NCBI GenBank assembly: GCA_002104945.1
Contig: MCFH01000005.1
Coordinates: forward strand, 1-64,000
DNA from: Piromyces finnis finn
Lineage: Eukaryota > Fungi > Neocallimastigomycota
Length of the DNA stretch: 64,000 bases
Direction: 5' to 3'
A model generated the notes under the pieces. The model was not told where the DNA came from, did not search any database, and worked only from the letters and a program-made list of their open reading frames with translations. Positions within the stretch are counted from its first letter, which is position 1. Every line of letters starts with the position of its first letter. Below, one piece after another: positions 21,900-63,988 of the stretch. The position numbers and the translations under genes were made by a program.

Positions 21900-23056
21900 T
21901 TTGTGGGTTTATATTTATATATTATTTCTTAAAAAAAAAAAAAAATTGAAGAATAAATATGTGAATTTAAACTTTTTTTTTTTATTTTATCTTTTAAATG
22001 ACAAATTATATGTATTTGGTATATTTTTAAATGAAACTAAAATAATAATACTATTATATATTGTTTTGGATGCAAAAAGATAATGAAAAAAAAAAGAAAA
22101 GTTTTGTTTTTTAAGTGTTTTTTTTTGTATTCATAGGATAATAGTTATTTTATAATTTTTATTTATTATTATATATTATAATCTTTATGTTTTTGTATTT
22201 ATATTATTTAAAAAGATTCATTTATATTTCAATTTTTCTTGATTGATTTCATTTTTTTAACTTATTTTTTTATTGTTTTTGTTTTTATTTTTTAATTTTA
22301 ATTTTAATTTAGTTATTATTTACACAGTTTTAATATAATTTTTATTTATTTAATTATTTATTTATACTATTTAATATATAAAAATTTTTATATTAAACAA
22401 TTGAAATTATATAAAATATATTTTGAATATAAAATTTTAAATAAAAATTAAATTGAAAAATATTAAAAACATAAAATTTTATTTTTTTTATACAAGAATT
22501 GGGATGTAGCTATAGCTTTGTATTTTTTTTTTTTATTAAAATACGTATTACTTTCAATTAAGTTTCTAATATAGAAAAAAAAAAGAATAAAAACAGTAAT
22601 AATAATAATAGTTGTTTCTTTTTTATAAAATAGTAAAATTATGAGTTAAATAATAATTTTAATATATACTACACTATAATACATCATCAAAATCCCCATT
22701 TATTTTGATTTTAAATTTTTTTTTTCTTTTACAATTATTATTGAACATTGTATGGTGGTGTGTTAAGTCTTTCCTTAAAATACCAATAAAATAAAAACAA
22801 AAAAAAAAAGAATTTTCTTAAACATATTTATTAACATAAATTAATATTGGTCAGTTTTATATACCTAATCTAAACAATTTAACAAAAAAATTTTTTTAGT
22901 TTTTATTAAATTTAGTAATACTCCTATAAATTATTAATAAAAACATTTTATATTAAAAGTATATAATGTTGTTACACAAAAATTCTTAAATTATAAATAA
23001 TAAGTTTTTATATGGTGTGATGTTTTAAGTTATACCATTAAAAGTATATTAATTTA

Positions 23057-26000
23057 TTAGTGCAGTTGATCCAAAATATATTGGTGAAGGGAGATAGTAT
23101 TGTATAATGTAGTAAAGAGTGATTCTATTTCTACTTTATAATTAATAAATAACATTTTTTCTATGGCTTTTCTTTTATAACAATATTAAATATTAAACTT
23201 AGTATATAATATATTGTTTACTTCTAATATAATAAGTACTTACTTTACTTGATGATTATTAAAACATTTATTAATTAGGGTAAAACATTTTTTCCTATCA
23301 TTATTAGTTAATGGGATCATCTGGGAATTTAATATTTTATAGCTAATATAAGTAATTGGAAATTAGTAAATAATAATACTATTAAAAAAAAAAAGGATAA
23401 ATTATAAAGTTACTTTTGAATATCATTATAATTAATACCAAGTGGTATTATTTCTGGAATTGATAAATGATCTTTATAATATTCAAGGGACTATAATAAA
23501 ATAAAATTTTATCATAATTATTAAAATTTAAAAAACTAAAAATATGTATTTTAATCTTATATATACTTTTGAGCCATTTTGATATATTAAAAATATTTCT
23601 TGGCCATAAGGATCAAAATCCATTAATCCATATATTTTAATATTTTTACTAAAAAAAAAATTATATCATTATAAAAAAAAAAAGTATTTTTAATTTTATA
23701 TATTTAAAAATAATATGTATTTCTTGTTTGTTTATTTGTATATTTACCTATTTTTTTGAGAGTCATTTAATTTTTTATTAAAGTATTTATTAATAGAGTC
23801 TTTATTTTTTTTATCTTTTGTTATATATTTTATTAGATATTTAATATGTATTAGTTTTTATTTATTTATTTATTTATATATTATTTTTTTTGTAAAAAAA
23901 ATTTTTGTATTACAATTTAATTTATTAATTAGATATCTCAAAAATAATCTTGTACATAAATCAGGATAGCCTTTTCCCTTAATTATTATTGAAACACAAT
24001 ATAAATAATCAAATATCATACATCTATTTAAGATGAAACTTTAATTTAAATCAATACCGTTACTAGGATAATATTTTTATATTTTTCTAGAAAATTTGAA
24101 TTATACAAGTATTGAAAAATGGCATCTTTTTCAATTACTATAATGGTATTTCCAAAAAATTCTATATGTTTTTTTTTAAAAAAATTTTATAGGTTAAGTA
24201 TTATTTTATATAATAATATAATATAAAATTCTCATAACAAAATGCAATATATATGTATGTAAAGGATATCTTCAATTTCATCTATATATGGGATTTGATT
24301 TACCTATTTAATTAAAAGAAATATATTAGAAATAATTAAAAAAATATAATAATTATAGTTAACAATTCTTTTCTACTTTTTTTTGGCAATTTATTAAAAT
24401 CCCTTTTTTTGTTTTAATAATAATATTCCCTGTTATTAACCCTTTTTGAGAAGCTATCTTTATTATATATAGATAATTTATTAATTATTGATAATTTAAA
24501 TTACATAATATTTATATCAGTATTACAATATTTAATGATGAATGTGGAACTCCAAGAGAGCAACTTATGTCATTAATAATCTGTTTTTGTATAAATTATT
24601 AATATATATATTTTAAATATTAAAAGAAATATATATTCATTAATATATTTAATATTTATTTCATTTCATTTTATATTATATATATATATATTTTTTTTTA
24701 CATTATTAACAGTTATTTGACTTTTATATAGAGTAACATTTCTATAATAAATATCTCTAAAATTGAAATAATATAATATACTATTAATTATTTTTATTAT
24801 AATAATATATTATTTACAATATATTTATATTATATTACCTTTTTGTAACAATAATATTATTTTTTAAAAAGCTTTGAAGTAATTGAAGGATAGAAACAAA
24901 AATTTCTAGATAAAATATAGTTTATACAATTAATATTATATATATTTAATGAAAAATCCTATTACATAATAAAAAAAAACATTCTGATGATAATTCTTAT
25001 ATTTTATACCAAAACTTTTAGATTTTTTTCTATTTAAATTAACATATTTAAATTTTAATTGCATTGAATTTGAATTATTTATTGGATTAATAGAAAAATT
25101 TGATTTTCCTCTTGAAATAAGTTTCAATCGTATCTTTTTATTAGGAATTGTTTGCATGCTTATTAATTCAAATTTTATAATTTCTAATAATTGATCGATG
25201 ATATTTAGTGTCCAAGAACTTTTAAAATTGTAATATAATTATAATAATCAAATGAATATATTATGCTTTTAATAGATATTATTATGTTATACAGTTATTA
25301 TATTACCTATCACGCAATAAAAAATCATAGGATGAATAATCTCTGAAAGAAATAGTAGAAATATTTTTGTATTTTTCTACAAGATTACTATACTCTTCCA
25401 TTATTAATTTTTTTTTTGTAGTACGTTTATTATTTTAAATATAAATAAATATATTTTCATCAAACATAAAAAAGAAAATATCTTTTATTATTTTACAAAA
25501 ATAAAAGTAATAAATAAAAAATAAAACAAATTTTGTACTTTTTTTTATTGAGCTATGAATTATACTACTTTCACTTATACTTTCCCATTCCTTTTTATCT
25601 ATTTTTTTGGAGACATAAATAAGAAATATTTTTTTTAAATAATTTTAATTATTATTAATAATTACCTGTTTTTTTATTGTCTAGTTTTAATGAATAACTA
25701 ATTTTATCCATATTGTAAATTGTTTTTATTCTATTATTCTTGTTTTCAAAAACTTGATTTGACATGTTAATACATACATTGTTAGTAATTCTGGTATTTT
25801 CCTTTTTTGAATTGAAACTTTTTATATTACTTTCATTATACATATATTCAAAATTATCTTGTTTTTCATTATTATTGGGCAATATTAAATTAATATTATC
25901 TATTATATTTTCATTAATAATATTTTGTGAATCTTTATTTATGTCATGGAAAAAAACATGAGATGAAGTATTACAATTTGTTTTAATTTTTTTTCTTTTA

Positions 26001-26883
26001 GTATTTTCATTAGAAAAATTATTGTCCCTATTTTTAAAATCTTTTTTGGTTGTATAATTATTATTGATTAAATTATTATTATATTCAATATTTGTAAAAA
26101 CCAAATTATTATTCATACTACTATTTAAATTTTTGATTTTTTTTCCATTACTATTTGAAATACAATTTCCTAAATTTAATACTTTATTCATGTATATATT
26201 TTCTGAGTAGTATTTATTATCGTTATTACGATTTGAATTAGTTAAAGATGTTATTGCTACGTAATTTTCCTCATTGTTAATAAGTCTATCAATATTTTTA
26301 TTTATATATTTATCATTAATATTAGTATTATTATTTAAAGTTTTTTCTTTTTCCTCGTTATTACTATAACATTCATATGTAATTCGTTTAATAGCATTAT
26401 GTAAACTTTGATTAATATTGATATCTTTTTTTTTTGTTTCCTTCATATTATTATTAATTTGGTCATTGAAATTTATATTAGCAATATTTATAGTGTTCAT
26501 ATTATTTTCATTTATTTTTAAATCATTTATATTGATTAATTTATTAATATTATATGATTTTTCATCATTATTATCATTACTATTAATTATGTTTATGTTC
26601 AAGTTTTCAATTTCTCTTTTAAATGAGTTATATATAAATAAATTTTCATTTTTTTCCTCTTGGTTTTTAAAATCTATTAAATATACAAAGGGTTAAAAAA
26701 TTAATTTAAAATTCTTGTTATTATTGTGTTACAATATAAAGAATTATCAAAAACATTTTTCTAATTTATTAGAATCTTCTAATAAATTTGAATATAAACA
26801 CTTTTTATTAATATATATTATAAATAATTACTTTTATTATTACTTATATTCATAGCATATTCAAACAAGTCATCATTGTTCAT
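23057..26883 (-). CDS. SPO11: Meiotic topoisomerase-like protein SPO11 (Top6A family), ~17 exons; the 5' Asn-rich exons are a less certain part of the model
   Basis: Manual exon chaining gives TKRDIYY (catalytic Tyr, exon 24702-24756), KSQITVNN|IINDISCSLGVPHSSLNI, ASQKGLITG, IIVIEKDAIFQYL, LVT|GKGYPDLCTR (exon 23914-23977), YGLMDFDPYG (exon 23567-23648), PLTNNDRKK, MLFINYKVEIESL and stop at 23057. Confidence 0.88.
24168..24269 (-). other. U12-type (minor spliceosome) AT-AC intron in SPO11
   Basis: Minus strand reads GAA G|ATATCCTTTACA...AATACTTAACC...AAAAAC|AT ATA GAA TTT. The 5' site matches the U12 consensus ATATCCTTT, a branch-like TACTTAAC lies at 24200-24193, and the 3' end is AC. Removal restores the frame into the EKD Toprim motif; retention gives a TGA stop. 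Confidence 0.85.
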
Positions 26884-52918: not shown

Positions 52919-54223
52919 ATGAGAGAATGGAAATGTGAATCAGGTACTTTTTCTGGCTATGAAACGGAAAATTGTATTCATATAAGTGGTATAAGATATG
53001 CAAATTCAGAAAGATATGGAAAACCTGTGCCATATAAATATAACGAAAATGTTTACGAATGTAAATCCTCACCTTTTGGTATTCAATTACATTCTGTAAT
53101 GGAAAATTATATTTCAGGTGTTGAATTTGAAAAAATGGAACAAGAAGAAAATTGTCAATATTTATCAATTACCATGCCTAAAAATATTAATAAGGAAAGT
53201 AAACTTCCAGTAATGGTATTTATTCATGGTGGATCTTATAAAAATGGTGGCTGTGATTTGAAATATTATGATAGAGAACCAATGGTAAAAGAAAATCAAA
53301 TTATTCATGTTGGAATCAATTATCGTTTAGGTGTATTTGGATTTTTAAGAGATAAAAATGGAAATATGTCAAATAATGGATTGTTTGATATAATTGAAGG
53401 ATTAAAATGGATCAAGAAAAATATTTCATCATTTGGAGGTAATTCAAACAACATAACTATTTATGGTCAATCTGCTGGAGGAGATGCAGTTCGTTGTGTT
53501 ATGCTTTCAAAAGGAACTGAACAATTATACCAACGAGCTATTATTCAAAGTGATCCAATTGGAACAATGTATAATCGAGAAAATATGGAAAATAAAATGT
53601 TAGAAGAATTAAATCAACTTCCTATTGATGCTACTATTGAACAATTGAAAGAATGTCAAGCATCTATTGCAAAAAATATCACTGAAAAAGGAAATCCAAA
53701 ATACATGATTTTTGCTCCTCATTTTGGAATTGATCCACTTCCTAAGATTGAGGATATTCCTAAAAGACTCCAAGAAATTGCACCAAGTCATCCATTATTT
53801 ATAGGAAATACATCAAGAGAAGTGGCTCTTTTTATTTCATCTAATAAATTAATTAGAGGGTTGAGTAGTATATTCTTAACTAGTTGGGCTATTGAAGGCA
53901 TTATAAAAAGAATTAGTAATTCTATATATCATAATCCTACGAGTATTTTTGCAAAGCAATATGCAGATGCTGGAGGTAAAACCTATCGTTATGTATTTTC
54001 ATGGGGTGAAAATGATTCATTTGTAGGTGCAGCACATATGTCTGAACTTTCTCTTCTTTTTGGAGGCTCTGAGGTTGTAGGAAGAGATATGGGAATGGGA
54101 CTAACTGAAGAAGAAATATATAAACAAGGAAAGCCTATAAGAGAATTATGGTCTAGCTTTGCCAAAACTGGCAATTTTAAAACAATGAAGATTGATGGTG
54201 TTATTGAAATTCAAAAATTATAG
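52919..54223 (+). CDS. Type-B carboxylesterase (alpha/beta hydrolase), intronless, copy 1
   Basis: GIRYA, ENCQYL, PVMVFIHGGSY, GINYRLGVFGF, GQSAG nucleophile elbow, NTSRE (acid) and GAAHMSEL (His). No signal peptide seen. Confidence 0.92.
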   Translation: MREWKCESGTFSGYETENCIHISGIRYANSERYGKPVPYKYNENVYECKSSPFGIQLHSVMENYISGVEFEKMEQEENCQYLSITMPKNINKESKLPVMVFIHGGSYKNGGCDLKYYDREPMVKENQIIHVGINYRLGVFGFLRDKNGNMSNNGLFDIIEGLKWIKKNISSFGGNSNNITIYGQSAGGDAVRCVMLSKGTEQLYQRAIIQSDPIGTMYNRENMENKMLEELNQLPIDATIEQLKECQASIAKNITEKGNPKYMIFAPHFGIDPLPKIEDIPKRLQEIAPSHPLFIGNTSREVALFISSNKLIRGLSSIFLTSWAIEGIIKRISNSIYHNPTSIFAKQYADAGGKTYRYVFSWGENDSFVGAAHMSELSLLFGGSEVVGRDMGMGLTEEEIYKQGKPIRELWSSFAKTGNFKTMKIDGVIEIQKL

Positions 54224-54685: not shown

Positions 54686-55975
54686 ATGGAATGGGAATGT
54701 GAAGCAGGTACTTTTTCTGGTTTTGAAACAGAATATTGTATTAATGTTAATGGCATTCGATATGCAAATTCAGAAAGATATGGTAAACCTGTGCCATATA
54801 AATATAACGAAAATGTTTACGAATGTAAATCCTCACCTTTTGGTATTCAATTAAGATCAGCCGTTGAAAATTATGTAAGTGGTGTTGAATATGAAAACTA
54901 TCCACAAGAAGAAAATTGTCAATATTTATCAATTACCATGCCTAAAAATGTTAATAAGGAAAGTAAACTTCCAGTAATGGTATTTATTCATGGTGGATCT
55001 TTTAAAAATGGTGGTTGCGATTCCAAATTTTATGATAGAGAACCAATGGTAAAAGAAAATCAAATTATTCATGTTGGAATCAATTATCGTTTAGGTGTAT
55101 TTGGATTTTTAAGAGATAAAAATGGAAATATGTCAAATAATGGATTATTTGATATAATTGAAGGATTAAAATGGATCAAGAAAAATATTTCATCATTTGG
55201 AGGTAATCCAGACAATATTACTATCTATGGACACTCTGCCGGAGGTTATGCAGTTCGTTGTGTTATGCTTTCAAAAGGAACTGAACAATTATACCAACGA
55301 GCTATTATTCAAAGTGATCCAATTGGAACAATGTATAATCGAGAAAATATGGAAAATAAAATGTTAGAAGAATTAAATCAACTTCCTATTGATGCTACTA
55401 TTGAACAATTGAAAGAATGTCAAGGCAACATTGAAAGAAATGTCACTGAAAAAGGAAATCCAAAATACATGATTTTTGCTCCTCATTTTGGAATTGATCC
55501 ACTTCCTAAGATTGAGGATATTCCTAAAAGACTCCAAGAAATTGCACCAAGTCATCCATTATTTATAGGAAATACCACAAGAGAATGGTCTATTTATTAT
55601 GCTGCAAAAGACATATATTATGAAGATTCTGAACCTGAAATTAAAAGCATAACAAATTCTCTCTATCATGAACCTACTACTAAATTTGCTAAACAATATA
55701 AAGAAGCAGGAGGGAAAACTTATCGTTATATATTTTCATGGGATGATAAAGATTGTAGCTATAAGAATAAACGTGTTGGAGCGGCACATTTATCAGATGT
55801 TATCCTTCTTTTTGGAGGTTTTGGCACAGTTGGAAGAGAAATGACATTAAATTTATCTGAAAAAGAAATAATTGAAAAAGGAAAACCTCTAAGAGAATTA
55901 TGGGCTAATTTTGCTAAAAATGGTACTTTTAATAAAATGAAAATTGATGGCATTATTGATATCCAAAAATTATAA
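54686..55975 (+). CDS. Type-B carboxylesterase, intronless, copy 2
   Basis: Same motifs with GHSAG, NTTRE and GAAHLSDV. Tandem paralog of 52919-54223. Confidence 0.92.
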   Translation: MEWECEAGTFSGFETEYCINVNGIRYANSERYGKPVPYKYNENVYECKSSPFGIQLRSAVENYVSGVEYENYPQEENCQYLSITMPKNVNKESKLPVMVFIHGGSFKNGGCDSKFYDREPMVKENQIIHVGINYRLGVFGFLRDKNGNMSNNGLFDIIEGLKWIKKNISSFGGNPDNITIYGHSAGGYAVRCVMLSKGTEQLYQRAIIQSDPIGTMYNRENMENKMLEELNQLPIDATIEQLKECQGNIERNVTEKGNPKYMIFAPHFGIDPLPKIEDIPKRLQEIAPSHPLFIGNTTREWSIYYAAKDIYYEDSEPEIKSITNSLYHEPTTKFAKQYKEAGGKTYRYIFSWDDKDCSYKNKRVGAAHLSDVILLFGGFGTVGREMTLNLSEKEIIEKGKPLRELWANFAKNGTFNKMKIDGIIDIQKL

Positions 55976-57479: not shown

Positions 57480-60400
57480 TTAGTCAAAATAATTAAAATG
57501 TAATACACCTTTTTGTTTCTTTTTATTTTTTTCATTTAATGTATTCGTAACTGTATTTTTCTCTGTTGTATCATAAATATAATAATATTCGGAATCATCA
57601 TCACCATATTTTTTGTCCTTTTTTACGTACTCTGATGAAGAAACTGCAGTTAAGTAATCTTCTGAATTTTCTGTATATTGATTTGTAGCTTTAGATGTAA
57701 AATAATCATTATTAACAGTGCTTTTACCCTTATTTTTACTATTTACACTATTTACTTTAACCACTTCATTATTATCTACAACTATATCATTGATCGAGGT
57801 CTTTAAATTATTCTTTTTGTTCTTTGCTTTGCTTTTATTTTTTTTTATATAAACATCATCATCTTTATTTCCAGTACACTTACTAAATAAACGGAACTTT
57901 CTGTTTTTCTTTTGCTTGATATTTGATTTTTCTCCATTAGAAAAAGTTGTAGTAGTAGTAGTAGTTGTAGTAATGTATTTACATTCATCAGAATTTGGTT
58001 TTTTTGAAGTATTAGTAGTATTTGTTGTGGTAACATTCTCATATTTATCAATTATTGGTTTATTTACATTGTATTCATTTGTATTAATATTATTGTTATT
58101 TTTATTTTCATATTCATCAGTACCTAGTTTTTTGTTAATTTCTAACATTTCAACTCTGTTCTTCTCTTTTAAATCTTGAATACTTTGACTAATTTCATTT
58201 AATTTATCCATTTCTTTTTGTGCTTCTTCACTGTTTCCATTATTATGGAACAATTTAGCATTTCTTTTTATGCTTGAGCGCTTTAAGAATTCATATTTTT
58301 CAATTGATTTCATAGTAGTATTCGCCACATCTTCTAAATCATCATCGATTTCATCTTGTCCATCAATAAATAAGTCTTGCTCAATTTTTGTAGTATAATA
58401 ATCTATATCGTCAAGATTATTATTTTGTTTGGTAATATCATCCATATTCTTTATATTCTCGTGTGATATTTTAGGCATAATACTTTGATCATTGTTACTT
58501 TGATAATTAGTTTCTGTAATATAAGTAGTCATTGGAACAGAAGATTCATTAATAGTGATTGTTTGATCCATGGGAACCTTCTTATCAACGGTTGACTTAT
58601 ACATTGTTGTAATGTTGTTATTTTTATTTGTTGGGTTAGTAGATGTTGTAGTAGTGGTAGTTATGGTTTCAGTTATAGTTTCAGTTATTTTTGGTGAATA
58701 TTTTGTGTTATCGGTATTTATTTCAGAAATCTTTGGAGAATAGTTAGTTTTAAAAGTTGGTTGATAAGTAATTTTGGTTTCAGAAATGGTTTTTGGTAAA
58801 GTAGTGGTGGTATAAGTTGTTTCATTATTTTTGAAGGATGGTTGATAAGAAGTATTCTTTGGAGAGAGAGTTATGGTTTCATTAACCTTTGATTTGGTTT
58901 CACTAATCTTTGACTCATTGTTATTATTGGTTGTAGTAGTAGTGGTAATGGTTTTAATGATTTTTTTCACTACTGGACCTGAAGATGAAGAAGTGGAATT
59001 CTTCATCTTTGGTGAAGTTTTAGTAATAACCTTTTTAACGCTAGTAGACTTCGGTGATGAAGAATTTTTGTTAGTTGTAGTAGTAGTTTTTGTAGTTATA
59101 GTTTTCTTTATTGTAGTTTGGGTAGACTTTGGAGAAGCGGAAGTTGATTCTCTTTTAACATTTGGCAAAGTAACTGTAGCAACTTCATTATTATTGTCGA
59201 AGAATGGATTATTAGTTGAAGTTGTTTTATTATCAACTAAATTAGAATTAAGTAGTTCATTTTGGTAATTAGTGGTAATAATCTTGATATTTTCACTAGA
59301 ATTTGGTTTATAGATTTCAGTTGTAGTATCAACATTTGTTAATGTTTCCGTAATTGGATATACAGTTACTTCATCATTAAGAAGCGTTTTGTTCATAGTA
59401 ATATAATTATTATGAGATTCAATAATTTTTGGTTTAAAATTGGATTTTAAATTATCATCAAAGAAAATGTTTGAATCAGTAGTATTAATAGTTTCCTTAA
59501 CTATTGGCATTTCATTTGTTGTTGTTAAATTATTTGGAACATATGGTGACCAAAGAGTTTCATTAATTTCATTGTTAATAGTTTGAGCATTATTAGCTTC
59601 ATTTGGTTGACATGAAACAGATGTATTTGAATTTTGAGTATTTATAGTGCTGAAGATGTTACTATTCATATTTTTATTCAAGTTCTCTGGATCAGATTCT
59701 ATCTTTGTAGATGAAAAATTACTTAATAATAAAGGGTCTTTTTTATCGATAGCATGACCTTTTGGAATGTTGTCAAATTCTTGTTTCTTTTCATCTAAAA
59801 TTTTATCATCTATATATTTGTGAATTTTAGGATGTTGCTTAAGTAATCCACTTTCTTTTTTTAATTCTGACTGAGTTTGAGTTAATTCATTCTCAGATTT
59901 AATTGTTGGGTTGAGTGGTTGTATAACTTCTGGTTCATTATCAGAAATATTATGTAAATGTAGATTTTTCAATGTATTACCTTTTGGAACTTCGGTAGTA
60001 GTATCATAATATTCTGTAGTTTCAGTACTTGGTGATATATGATGTGAGCTAGAGTAGGATTGATGTGGTGTAATATATGGACTAGAATCTTTACTATAGG
60101 TACCTGAATTTATTTTTATTTGGGTTGGTGGATTTTGTGCACTAAAAGCATTAGGTGAGGAAGTGTTACTATTTAATAAATCTTGATTTATACGTTTTTG
60201 TTGAAGTTGAAGAATTGGCATATCATCATCACTGTCATTATCAAACTCTTTATTTTCCTTTTGCATATCTATTTGAATGGGTGATATTAAAATTTTTTCT
60301 TCTAAAAGTTTATTGTTGTTTGTTGATTGAATTGAATTAGAGTCATTAATAGTGTTACTATTACTACTATTATTATTAGATTTATTTTTTCTTGAGAAAA

Positions 60401-63400
60401 ATTTTGTAAAAGAAGAGCGTTTACTCTCTTTTTTCTTAAGACTGGCTTTATCGCTGTCACTTTTAATTGATTCTGTGCTACTCTTTGAAAAAATATTTTT
60501 TAATGGGTTTCTTCTTTTACCATCTTTATTTTCACTCTTCTTACTCTTTTGATTACGACCAAGTAACTTATCACTTTGAGGTGGTATAGATGTAGAATTT
60601 ATTTGAGAAGATGGAATCATGGAAGGAGCTTCAATATTAGTTTCATCATTTGTTGAGTATTTGGAATTTTGTGAAAGCATTGATTGACGATATATATTAT
60701 TTTTACTTGGACTATAAGTTTGGCCTATATTATTGATTGCATTTATATCATTAATTAATGTAACTTGAGAATCACGATGATTTTTTCCTGTAGAATTAAT
60801 ATTGTTTACTGGTTGAGTAAATACTTTAGATGTGGTAGTAGTCGATTCTTTTTCACCTACAATTGAATCGTGGGATATTTGATTTGGATTATCATTGATA
60901 TCTGCTTTAATAATACTACTATCAAGGATAAAAGAGGAAGATTGATCCTGTGAATTAGAAATAATGTTATTACTATTGTTATAATTCTTAAATTCACGAG
61001 AATTTAAAAGAGTTGAAATATCTGGATTGGAAAATACCGGATATTCGTTTAAATTGCATACATCATAAAGATCTGGTTGTATTTGACTTATTGATTCATC
61101 TATTTCCATACTGTCTTCAATATTATGATTAGTGTTATAAATGAGTGGATTAATTCTTTCTTTATTTCTCTTATATGTAGTACTTTTGTTATTAGGAGTA
61201 TTAATATCATTACTACTAATATTTGAAGTTAAATCGTTAAACTTTAAATTATTTTCATTATTTTGGGTTAATGAAACAATAATAGCTTGGGCCTTCATTA
61301 AAGAAAATTCAAGATTAACAATCATTTCGGATTGACGATCACAACATTTACGAAGATCATTTATTTTTTGATTTTGTTGCTGAATTTTTTGTTCATTTTT
61401 CTTTTCAATTTTTTCTTGCTTCCTATTTTGTGGCTTGGATGAGGTTTCAGTAGTTTTATTATTTTTATTTGTCTTATTCTCATCTTTATTTTCTAAACCT
61501 AATTCTTCCTTGTAATCAAGAAGACTGAATTCCTTGCCATCTTCAACTGGATCATCATCAACAATAATAGAGTTCATAATATCAGATTTAATATTTTCTA
61601 AAGTAGTATTAGCTTCTTTAATTAATCTTTCATTTTCTTCATCATTGCCATCCTTTAATGGTTGTTGAAGTTTACTTAATGCTTCAATTTTTTCCATTAA
61701 TCTAACCTGTTCTGTTTGTAAATTTTCAATATGGCGTTGTTGATCAGAAGAATATTGTTTCCAGTGATTAACTTGAGAATTTAGTGTTTCAGCAGCTTGG
61801 ACTAAATCCATCTGATAGTTATCTTCACTTTTAATATGTTGATGTTCAGTCTTGACAATTTCTTCTGCCTTACGAACAACATTTTCAGTACCTTCAGTAT
61901 TTGAAAGGGAAGAGCTGGTTTTTAAACTTTGGACATCATTACTTTGATTTTCAACTAAAACTTCTTTAAGCTTTTTGAAAATTTTATTATAGTGGTTTAA
62001 AACCTCTGCATAAATTTTATTGTCATGTTGGTTAGAAGCAAGATTAGCAAGATCATCATCACTAAATATATCAGTTAAATCGCTCTTAAAAGAATATATA
62101 TCTGATGGTACATCTTTACTGAAATTTGAAACTATATCACAGTCTTTACGAGAAGCTTCAGAGTAAGGTATGGAGGAATTGCTTAATCTCTTCTTTTCAA
62201 TTAATTTTTTTATAATTTTCTTATATTTGAGACTTTGCTTTTCAAGTTGAACCTTGTGCTTTTCTTTCTGCTTAATTTGTAATTGATAAAGCTTTTCCAT
62301 TCTTTCCTGAGCTTGATTAATTCTATCAGAGAGTTCAGCCATTTGTGCTTGAAGAGCTTCATTAATCTTTTCTTTTTCTTCTAATTGATCCTTTAAGTTA
62401 TTAATATGTTCTTCATAATTAATGACAGAATCATTCAACGATTGATTTTTGTTTTCAATTTCTTTGACCTTTTCGTTAGATTTTTTAATAATGGCATCTT
62501 TTTCATCTAATACACTAATAAGGAAGGAAAGCTTATTTTTTGAACTTTCTAATTCTCTTTCTTTATTTTTTATACTATCATTTGTATTATTAATTTGTTT
62601 ATCTTTTTCATTTAAGAGAGCGGATAAATACTCTAATTTTTCTCTTAATTCATCTATATTTTGTTGTCCTTCTTCTGTCCTTTGTTTAAGTTCTTTTTCA
62701 AACTTTTTGTATTTTTGACTATTTTTTCTACCTAAAATTTGATTTTCTTCTAATGATAACAATGTATCAGTATACTGCTTTATAATTTCCATTCTGTCCT
62801 TAATTTCAGCATCTTTAGCTTCAATAGCTTTTGTAAGAGTCTTAATTTTAGAATCTTCATGTAATTCTTCTTCAATCTTATCGACAGAAGATTCATTCCT
62901 TATTGAACATTTACTTTTTTGTTTTTCATTAGTAGTAATATTAGGCATCTTTTTAGTTTGTTCTTCGTTATGCTCAATTTTATTCTCATTATGGATAATT
63001 TTATTATTAATAATATTATCAACAAAACTTTTACTATTTCTTTCTTTAGATTCTGATGAATTCATTTTTGGAGAAATACTTGGCCTTACACTAGATATTC
63101 TACGTGGAACTAATGATGGTAATAAATAAGTTTGAGTTTGAGATTTAACTTCTGATGATTTTGGTAAATTATTAATAGATTCTGTTCCTGGAGAACTACA
63201 ATTTGATTTTGGTGAATTTGATTCTGGTGAATTTGATTCTGGTGAATTTAATTTTGGTAATCTGGTATTAGAAATTTTTATATCATTAGTAATATTATTA
63301 ATACGTTTAAGTGAAGCAGTACGAACTGGTTTTTCATTAGTAATTTTTTTTGTAATTGGTTTATCATTATTAATTACAGTATTTTCAGTAATAATAGTCT

Positions 63401-63988
63401 TTTTAATAATACTTGGTTTTTGTATCACCTTGGTTTCAACAGTTGGTTCTAATATCTCATCATCTTCAATTAATGAATCATTTATAAATCCATTTGACTT
63501 TATTGTAGTAGTACTAGTACAAATGGTTTTATTAGTGTCTATGGGTTTTCTTTTGGAAACTGTTATTGTTTCTGTATTGATAGTAATAATTCTTTTCTTA
63601 CCACCGGTTGGTTCATTAACAACTTCTTCAGTTACAACTGGCTCACAATAAGTTTTTTCAGTAACAATTTGTTCTCCGTTTTCAATAGATGATTCTGATT
63701 TGATAATTGTTTGTTCAGTAGTTATTGGAAGAATATTAGAGGTTGATTCATCATTAATACCTTCCATTGCCTTAATTACCTCTTGTGAGTCTTCTTCAAA
63801 GATTGTTTCAAGGTAATCGATATCATTTGAATAATTCATTATTTCATTTTTTGGTTCGTTAATAATATATTCTTTACTTGAAGATTCATCTTCTTCATCT
63901 GAAGAATCCTTAAGATCTCCTGAAACTGACACATATGGAACAGTAAATTTTGTAACAGCTGGTGCAGCTTTTGGAGTAACATCATCAT
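57480..63988 (-). CDS. Final ~6.5 kb exon of a very large coiled-coil/low-complexity protein; 5' part lies outside the window
   Basis: The open frame continues upstream of the called GTG start to an acceptor (aaacag|) at about 63989. It has heptad-rich coiled-coil segments, Thr/Ser-rich regions and SPESN-SPESN-SPKSN repeats. No family was recognised. Confidence 0.7.

Follow-up and report, generated by a model that had tools for sequence, protein, structure and literature searches.

The gene considered here is a multi-exon SPO11 gene of the fungus Piromyces finnis, located on the minus strand at about 26500 to 23057 of the analysed window, by which the whole 64-kb stretch of DNA is meant. The core of the gene (23057..25598, minus strand) is defined by the gene model, eight GT-AG joints seen in RNA and a blastp search, with RNA support extending over about 23060-25590. 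The exons described below are all on the minus strand. The gene model places the catalytic tyrosine in an exon encoding the motif (K)RDIYY (24702..24756), an edge of which coincides with an RNA joint. Exon 6 (24377..24457) has its donor GT at 24376 and is followed by exon 7 (24270..24303), a mini-exon of 34 nt, which encodes VNQIPYIDEIE and the first base, G, of the next codon. Exon 8 (24058..24167; IEFFGNTIIVIEKDAIFQ..LVT) contains the start of the Toprim domain, as indicated by a Pfam match, a PDB match and RNA pieces. Further downstream, the gene model includes the GKGYPD exon (23914-23977), the DFDPYG exon (23567-23648) and the stop codon (23057-23059). The interval separating the GKGYPD exon from the DFDPYG exon contains a predicted low-complexity exon (YKKNKDSINKYFNKKLNDSQKNS) at positions 23748-23814, which is required to maintain the frame, has no supporting RNA contig and lies in a partly masked region.

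The spliced model contains RDIYY, the Toprim motif IEKD, GKGYPD..TR and DFDPYG, and all the catalytic motifs are intact. Exon 8 alone scores 26.4 bits with the Pfam family PF21180 (TOP6A-Spo11_Toprim), for which the cut-off is 24.1, and the next exon extends this match across profile positions 29 to 30. The same exon is similar to topoisomerase VI subunit A of Sulfolobus (PDB 2zbk_A, E 4e-4). Among named SPO11 proteins, those from chytrids, molluscs and vertebrates were up to 34-35% identical to the spliced core in a blastp search, the best match being SPO11 of Geranomyces (E 3e-57); SPO11 proteins of a frog and a fish gave E values of about 1e-50 or better. Taken together, these sequence similarities indicate an apparently intact gene for SPO11/topoisomerase VI subunit A, with a predicted role in the formation of double-strand breaks.

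The RNA-seen GT-AG joints are 25394|25539, 25218|25307, 24905|25010, 24756|24839, 24457|24527, 24303|24377, 23342|23414 and 23171|23244. Apart from the joint discussed below, all RNA-supported junctions of SPO11 are of the GT-AG type. Since RNA contains the joint 25394|25539, the ATG at 25401, which had been taken as the start of SPO11, is located inside a GT-AG intron (25395-25538). The transcript reaches an upstream exon at 25539-25598 (minus strand), which has no in-frame ATG. Further upstream, an Asn-rich ORF of 315 aa (25666-26500, minus strand) is in frame with the SPO11 core via this exon. Judging by the in-frame join, 25666..26500 is a predicted first coding exon encoding an Asn-rich low-complexity N-terminal extension, and the SPO11 protein may be about 700 aa long with a long low-complexity N-terminus; the link from 25666 to 25598 is predicted, without RNA support.

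The window as a whole is extremely poor in G and C (about 17% G+C). Two tandem intronless carboxylesterase genes (52919-54223 and 54686-55975, plus strand) are found in a stretch of higher G+C content, and NCBI and EukProt list both products among the proteins of the source genome. The nearest Atlas clusters of the product of 52919-54223 are bacterial (Bacteroidota and Actinomycetota). Bacterial gene transfer is known for anaerobic gut fungi, and the tandem pair looks like the outcome of such a transfer followed by duplication. Both the low G+C content and these intronless carboxylesterases of bacterial type agree with the label of a putative anaerobic gut fungus given in the original prediction. 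The G+C content of the window is highest, at about 27%, in the part that holds an uninterrupted ORF of 2,150 aa without a Pfam match (57480-63932, minus strand).

Exons 7 and 8 of SPO11 are separated by a phase-1 intron of 102 nt (24168..24269, minus strand), short and composed almost purely of A and T, whose terminal dinucleotides are AT and AC. Its assignment to the U12 type is supported by sequence, reading frame, an RNA contig and positional orthology. The 5′ splice site, ATATCCTTT (24261..24269, minus strand), is a perfect match to the consensus RTATCCTT and represents the sequence recognised by U11 and U6atac. A candidate branch site, TACTTAAC (24193..24200, minus strand), matches TCCTTAAC at 7/8 positions. 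The intron closes with AAAAAAAAAC at its 3′ side, and no other AC or AG occurs between the branch motif and the terminal AC (24168..24169, minus strand). The distance from a U12 branch motif (TCCTTRAY) to the 3′ end of the intron is usually about 10-20 nt. Here this distance is 26 nt, measured from the 7th base of TACTTAAC, an A, compared with 8-18 nt in five orthologous U12 introns. A possible alternative branch region would be a T7/A9 run less distant from the 3′ end, where pairing with U12 could occur only via G-U wobbles. The original prediction had already described the branch site as imperfect and further from the 3′ end than usual, and both the 7/8 match and the distance bear this out.

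Excision of the intron joins the two exons through a phase-1 codon, G|AT, giving ..VNQIPYIDEIE-D-IEFFGNTIIVIEKDAIFQ. The joined reading, ..IDEIE-D|IEFFGNTIIVIEKD, runs on in frame to the EKD motif of the Toprim domain. When the intron is retained, the reading continues as ..EDILYIHIYCILL and meets TGA after 12 codons. All frame-keeping, stop-free excisions from the first base of exon 7 up to the Toprim motif were enumerated exhaustively. Neither GT-AG nor GC-AG boundaries occurred among those within exons 7 to 8, and no in-frame GT/GC-AG splice led directly from exon 6 to exon 8. In DNA this rich in A and T, chance places many AT..AC pairs in frame, but the pair 24269/24168 alone carries the U12 consensus. 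The claims made from the letters alone, namely that SPO11 has a 102-nt U12-type AT-AC intron, that its removal restores the EKD frame, that its retention leads to a TGA and that it has no frame-compatible GT-AG alternative, are all upheld, the last of them with GC-AG splices included.

By itself, the octamer RTATCCTT is no more frequent than background. It was seen eight times in the window, against 7.8 occurrences expected from a background frequency of about 6e-5 per position. The remaining seven sites were considered as introns and rejected. They lie inside exons or in non-coding DNA and have no branch motif, and are thus regarded as chance matches. A CTTAAC within the last 40 nt contributes a further P of about 0.006. 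On sequence grounds, the significance of the SPO11 match is in its position, i.e. an octamer at the exact ancestral alignment column and phase, and not in the octamer alone. An Rfam search of the 64-kb window identified neither an snRNA nor a member of any other Rfam family.

Evidence from RNA was sought in four runs (Logan contigs) of the same organism, which were compared with positions 22900-25600 (2,701 letters). A repeat mask hid positions 24160-24193 in this comparison, and for this reason the contig pieces stop at 24159. Record 6 of run X3 (217 nt, depth 4) contains exons 5, 6 and 7 and continues to 24266; it then has four unplaced letters and resumes from 24159 downward. Between G24270 and T24159, the contig therefore has eight letters, the first four of which are ATAT. 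Eight letters are exactly what the junction 24270|24167 predicts (ATATAGAA). As 24160-24163 are masked, the match consists of the letter count and the first four letters only. As ATAT is present both at the start of the intron and at the start of exon 8, the cut could formally be shifted by up to 4 nt; among these ambiguous cuts, the splice consensus fits the AT-AC reading alone. The splicing of the AT-AC intron is thus supported by RNA, and the junction 24269^24168, for which inspection of RNA had been proposed, agrees with the contig by letter count and ATAT.

A different transcript is represented by record 2 of run X1 (392 nt, depth 3.4), which comprises exons 2 through 6 and has just two further letters ahead of 24159. 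This RNA lacks exon 7, and the donor of exon 6 (GTAGAA, 24376), which also serves the splice to exon 7, is connected to the AG at 24163-24162, the inferred joint being 24161|24377. This AG acceptor of a U2-type splice (24162..24163, minus strand) is located 6 nt downstream of the 3′ end of the U12 intron. The mRNA is frameshifted and ends in ..CQKK NFLEIPL and a stop codon. A non-productive U2-type alternative splice therefore exists in this gene. Each of the isoforms, productive and exon-skipped, is represented by one low-depth contig, and the two contigs derive from unrelated culture data sets. No contig among the four runs compared with 22900-25600 covers the interior of the intron or represents its retention. 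The RNA contigs, which come from independent studies, have zero letters differing from the genome.

The age of the intron was assessed by comparison with other SPO11 genes. An intronless fungal SPO11 obtained in a metagenome scan (L014) served as the query for named SPO11 proteins; these were mapped exactly onto their genomic loci and aligned, and the introns were placed on the alignment. The AT-AC intron interrupts column 254 in phase 1, and the E of EK[DE] follows 12 codons later. An intron at the same column and in the same phase was found in a fish, Puntigrus (5′ end GTATCCTTCC), in an echidna, Tachyglossus (GTATCCTTTG), in a starfish, Acanthaster (GTATCCTTTT), in a coral, Porites (GTATCCTTAC) and in a moss, Ceratodon (GTATCCTTTA). 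All five are U12-type GT-AG introns that begin with GTATCCTT, and in each a CCTTAAC-like motif precedes the terminal AG by 8-18 nt. The annelid Capitella has an ordinary U2-type intron (GTTAAG..CAG) at column 254, likewise in phase 1. No intron was present at this column in Hydra, in the chytrids Powellomyces and Geranomyces, or in Phycomyces and Dichotomocladium (Mucoromycota). The mini-exon preceding the U12 intron is homologous as well, with a length of 34 nt in Piromyces finnis and 37 nt in the fish. Tachyglossus, Acanthaster, Porites and Ceratodon have the same pair of intron positions flanking the mini-exon, and several other intron positions are common to some or all of the compared SPO11 genes, including those of animals. 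The deposited SPO11 protein of Phycomyces blakesleeanus needs a non-canonical AG..TT ‘intron’ at residue 248, which is probably a modelling error in the record. A fish protein named ‘diacylglycerol kinase (ATP)’ (P0168) is a full-length SPO11 by its sequence and Pfam domains.

The identical column and phase in SPO11 of vertebrates, a starfish, a coral and a moss characterise the intron as an ancient one that was retained, and not as a switch of a new kind. The comparison with orthologues, suggested originally as a way to find out whether the intron is ancestral, thus places it at the column and phase of the animal and moss U12 intron. The simplest reading of the alignment would be that an ancestral U12-type intron was kept in Piromyces finnis and was lost or converted in other lineages. 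The U12 signals in SPO11 of the starfish, coral, moss and fungus suggest that this minor intron probably dates to early eukaryotes. The AT-AC termini would then have arisen in Piromyces finnis SPO11 by a switch of subtype from an ancestral GT-AG intron; switches between U12 subtypes, as reportedly described by Burge, Padgett and Sharp in 1998, are an established phenomenon.

Closer relatives were sought in metagenomes and in homologue searches. The metagenome scan with the pattern GKGYPD..TR returned 72 loci, 35 of which had an SPO11-like sequence. Among the 72 loci, there was no AT-rich anaerobic fungus and no RTATCCTT upstream of an EKD exon. A two-row alignment search for relatives in metagenomes found none. 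The homologue searches, some of which used pieces of the window exons, returned no SPO11 of Neocallimastigomycota, and the best identity to the window SPO11 among the homologues returned was about 35%. With the 36-aa exon 8 as the query against protein representatives, the sole match was a spurious repeat protein (P0001), which was rejected.

The reading most consistent with these data, with an estimated probability of about 0.9, is that 24168..24269 is a U12-dependent AT-AC intron in SPO11 that goes back at least to an ancestor shared by fungi, animals and plants. The same segment could in principle be bounded differently, as a U12-type AT-AG intron that ends at the AG at 24163-24162 and gives ..IDEIE-E-FFGNT. 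Excision of such an intron would likewise be in frame. However, it predicts two letters between G24270 and T24159, where record 6 of X3 has eight, beginning with ATAT, and an AC precedes this AG after the branch motif, so the AT-AG ending deserves very little credence. Removal of the AT-AC intron by the major (U2-type) spliceosome is equally improbable. Rare U2-dependent AT-AC introns exist (PMC1557818), but the 5′ end of the SPO11 intron is a perfect U12 consensus and is not U1-like, and the orthologous introns of five lineages carry GTATCCTT together with U12-type branch motifs. An artefact, either an assembly error or a decaying pseudogene with a chance coincidence of frames, might be suspected from the extreme AT-richness and the number of AT..AC pairs that are in frame by chance. 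Against it, spliced RNA contigs of independent studies match the genome without differing letters, every catalytic motif is intact and the position is orthologous to that of a known U12 intron; in view of the RNA contigs and the orthologous position, an artefact is close to excluded.

A functional elaboration of the U12-dependent intron, building on the original suggestion of a switch by splicing or retention, is a regulated gate, in which the balance of U12 splicing, as the productive outcome, with retention or U2-type skipping of exon 7 would set the output of SPO11 and hence the capacity for double-strand breaks. The occurrence of two isoforms in two RNA data sets (productive in X3; exon-skipped and frameshifted in X1) hints at a switch and is only a hint, each isoform being a single contig of depth about 3-4 in a type of data where contigs drop rare variants. 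There were zero retention contigs, and the alternative form that was seen is GT-AG skipping of exon 7. Cryptic U2 splicing commonly arises as a by-product around U12 introns. The U12 intron and the mini-exon have been kept for more than 1 billion years in several lineages, although Larue and Roy argue that the persistence of minor introns may be largely neutral, and many lineages keep meiosis after losing or converting the SPO11 U12 intron. In the mouse, spermatogenesis is disturbed when U11 is lost, and Spo11 counts as one of the minor-intron genes (PMC12956336); on the other hand, Larue and Roy saw no cell-cycle link in a fungus. On balance, a regulated gate seems unlikely. A broader scheme, in which the mini-exon and the U12 intron would form a conserved regulatory module predating the split of fungi, animals and plants, the competition of slow U12 splicing with U2-type skipping would set the dose of functional SPO11 and the fungus would restrict breaks to an undescribed sexual stage, is a speculation with rather low odds.

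For the U12-dependent intron, the following course of splicing can be proposed. U11 snRNA would pair with ATATCCTTT and U12 snRNA with the branch region, the presumed branch point being in TACTTAAC. U4atac/U6atac.U5 would join next and U11 would be replaced by U6atac, following the established pathway, with a presumed dependence on the U11/U12 machinery. The first AC downstream would be used as the 3′ site, and the 34-nt mini-exon would be joined to the first Toprim exon with the reading frame preserved as far as EKD. In competition with this, a U2-type splice connects the exon 6 donor with the AG located 6 nt past the AC, leaving out the mini-exon and yielding a frameshifted, presumably non-functional mRNA. 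This skipping may be read as a usual by-product of slow minor splicing.

Several elements of this picture have been published. Larue and Roy (2023; PMC10639083) reported minor introns in Piromyces finnis and Neocallimastix californiae, as well as most or all of the minor snRNAs in both species. The splicing of the AT-AC intron in RNA indicates that Piromyces finnis has a working minor spliceosome. The original prediction of a functional minor spliceosome in this lineage is thus supported, and at the level of the lineage it is not new in view of PMC10639083. SPO11 is listed as a human U12-intron gene (PMC7612377), and PMC12956336 treats it as a minor-intron gene that is conserved in mammals and chordates and is ‘major’ and ‘lineage-restricted’ outside these groups; SPO11 as a minor-intron gene is therefore already known in mammals. 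SPO11 was not found in one supplementary text file of PMC10639083, and the literature searched contained no publication pairing SPO11 with Neocallimastigomycota. Contrary to PMC12956336, the SPO11 minor intron is not restricted to chordates, with the starfish, coral and moss introns assigned by consensus signals only. The SPO11 AT-AC intron is a further instance of a known intron class and leaves the knowledge of the minor-intron mechanism unchanged. It adds a minor intron with RNA support to a fungal lineage that has few of them, and documents SPO11 mRNA, both productive and non-productive, in cultures of an organism without a described sexual cycle. Since predictors limited to GT-AG introns would be expected to break SPO11 at this point, the intron is also a concrete marker for correct gene modelling.

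In animals, minor-spliceosome deficiency has been described as giving rise to cryptic splices of the U2 type and to skipped exons around U12 introns. The exon-skipped SPO11 transcript resembles this condition, as its U2-type GT-AG splice bridges the U12 intron together with the upstream exon and causes a frameshift; it differs in that the skip in Piromyces finnis comes from ordinary culture data and from one contig. The minor intron of SPO11 in vertebrates, numbered 7 in the fish and echidna genes, shares with the Piromyces finnis intron the column, phase 1, the distance of 12 codons to EKD, the preceding mini-exon and the 5′ consensus TATCCTT. The differences concern the termini, which are AT-AC in Piromyces finnis and GT-AG in 5/5 of the other U12 copies compared, the distance from the branch motif to the 3′ end, which is 26 nt in Piromyces finnis and 8-18 nt in the U12 orthologues, and the length and composition, the Piromyces finnis intron being short, at 102 nt, and nearly pure A/T. 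The minor introns reported in Neocallimastigomycetes (PMC10639083) belong to the same intron class as the AT-AC intron of SPO11.
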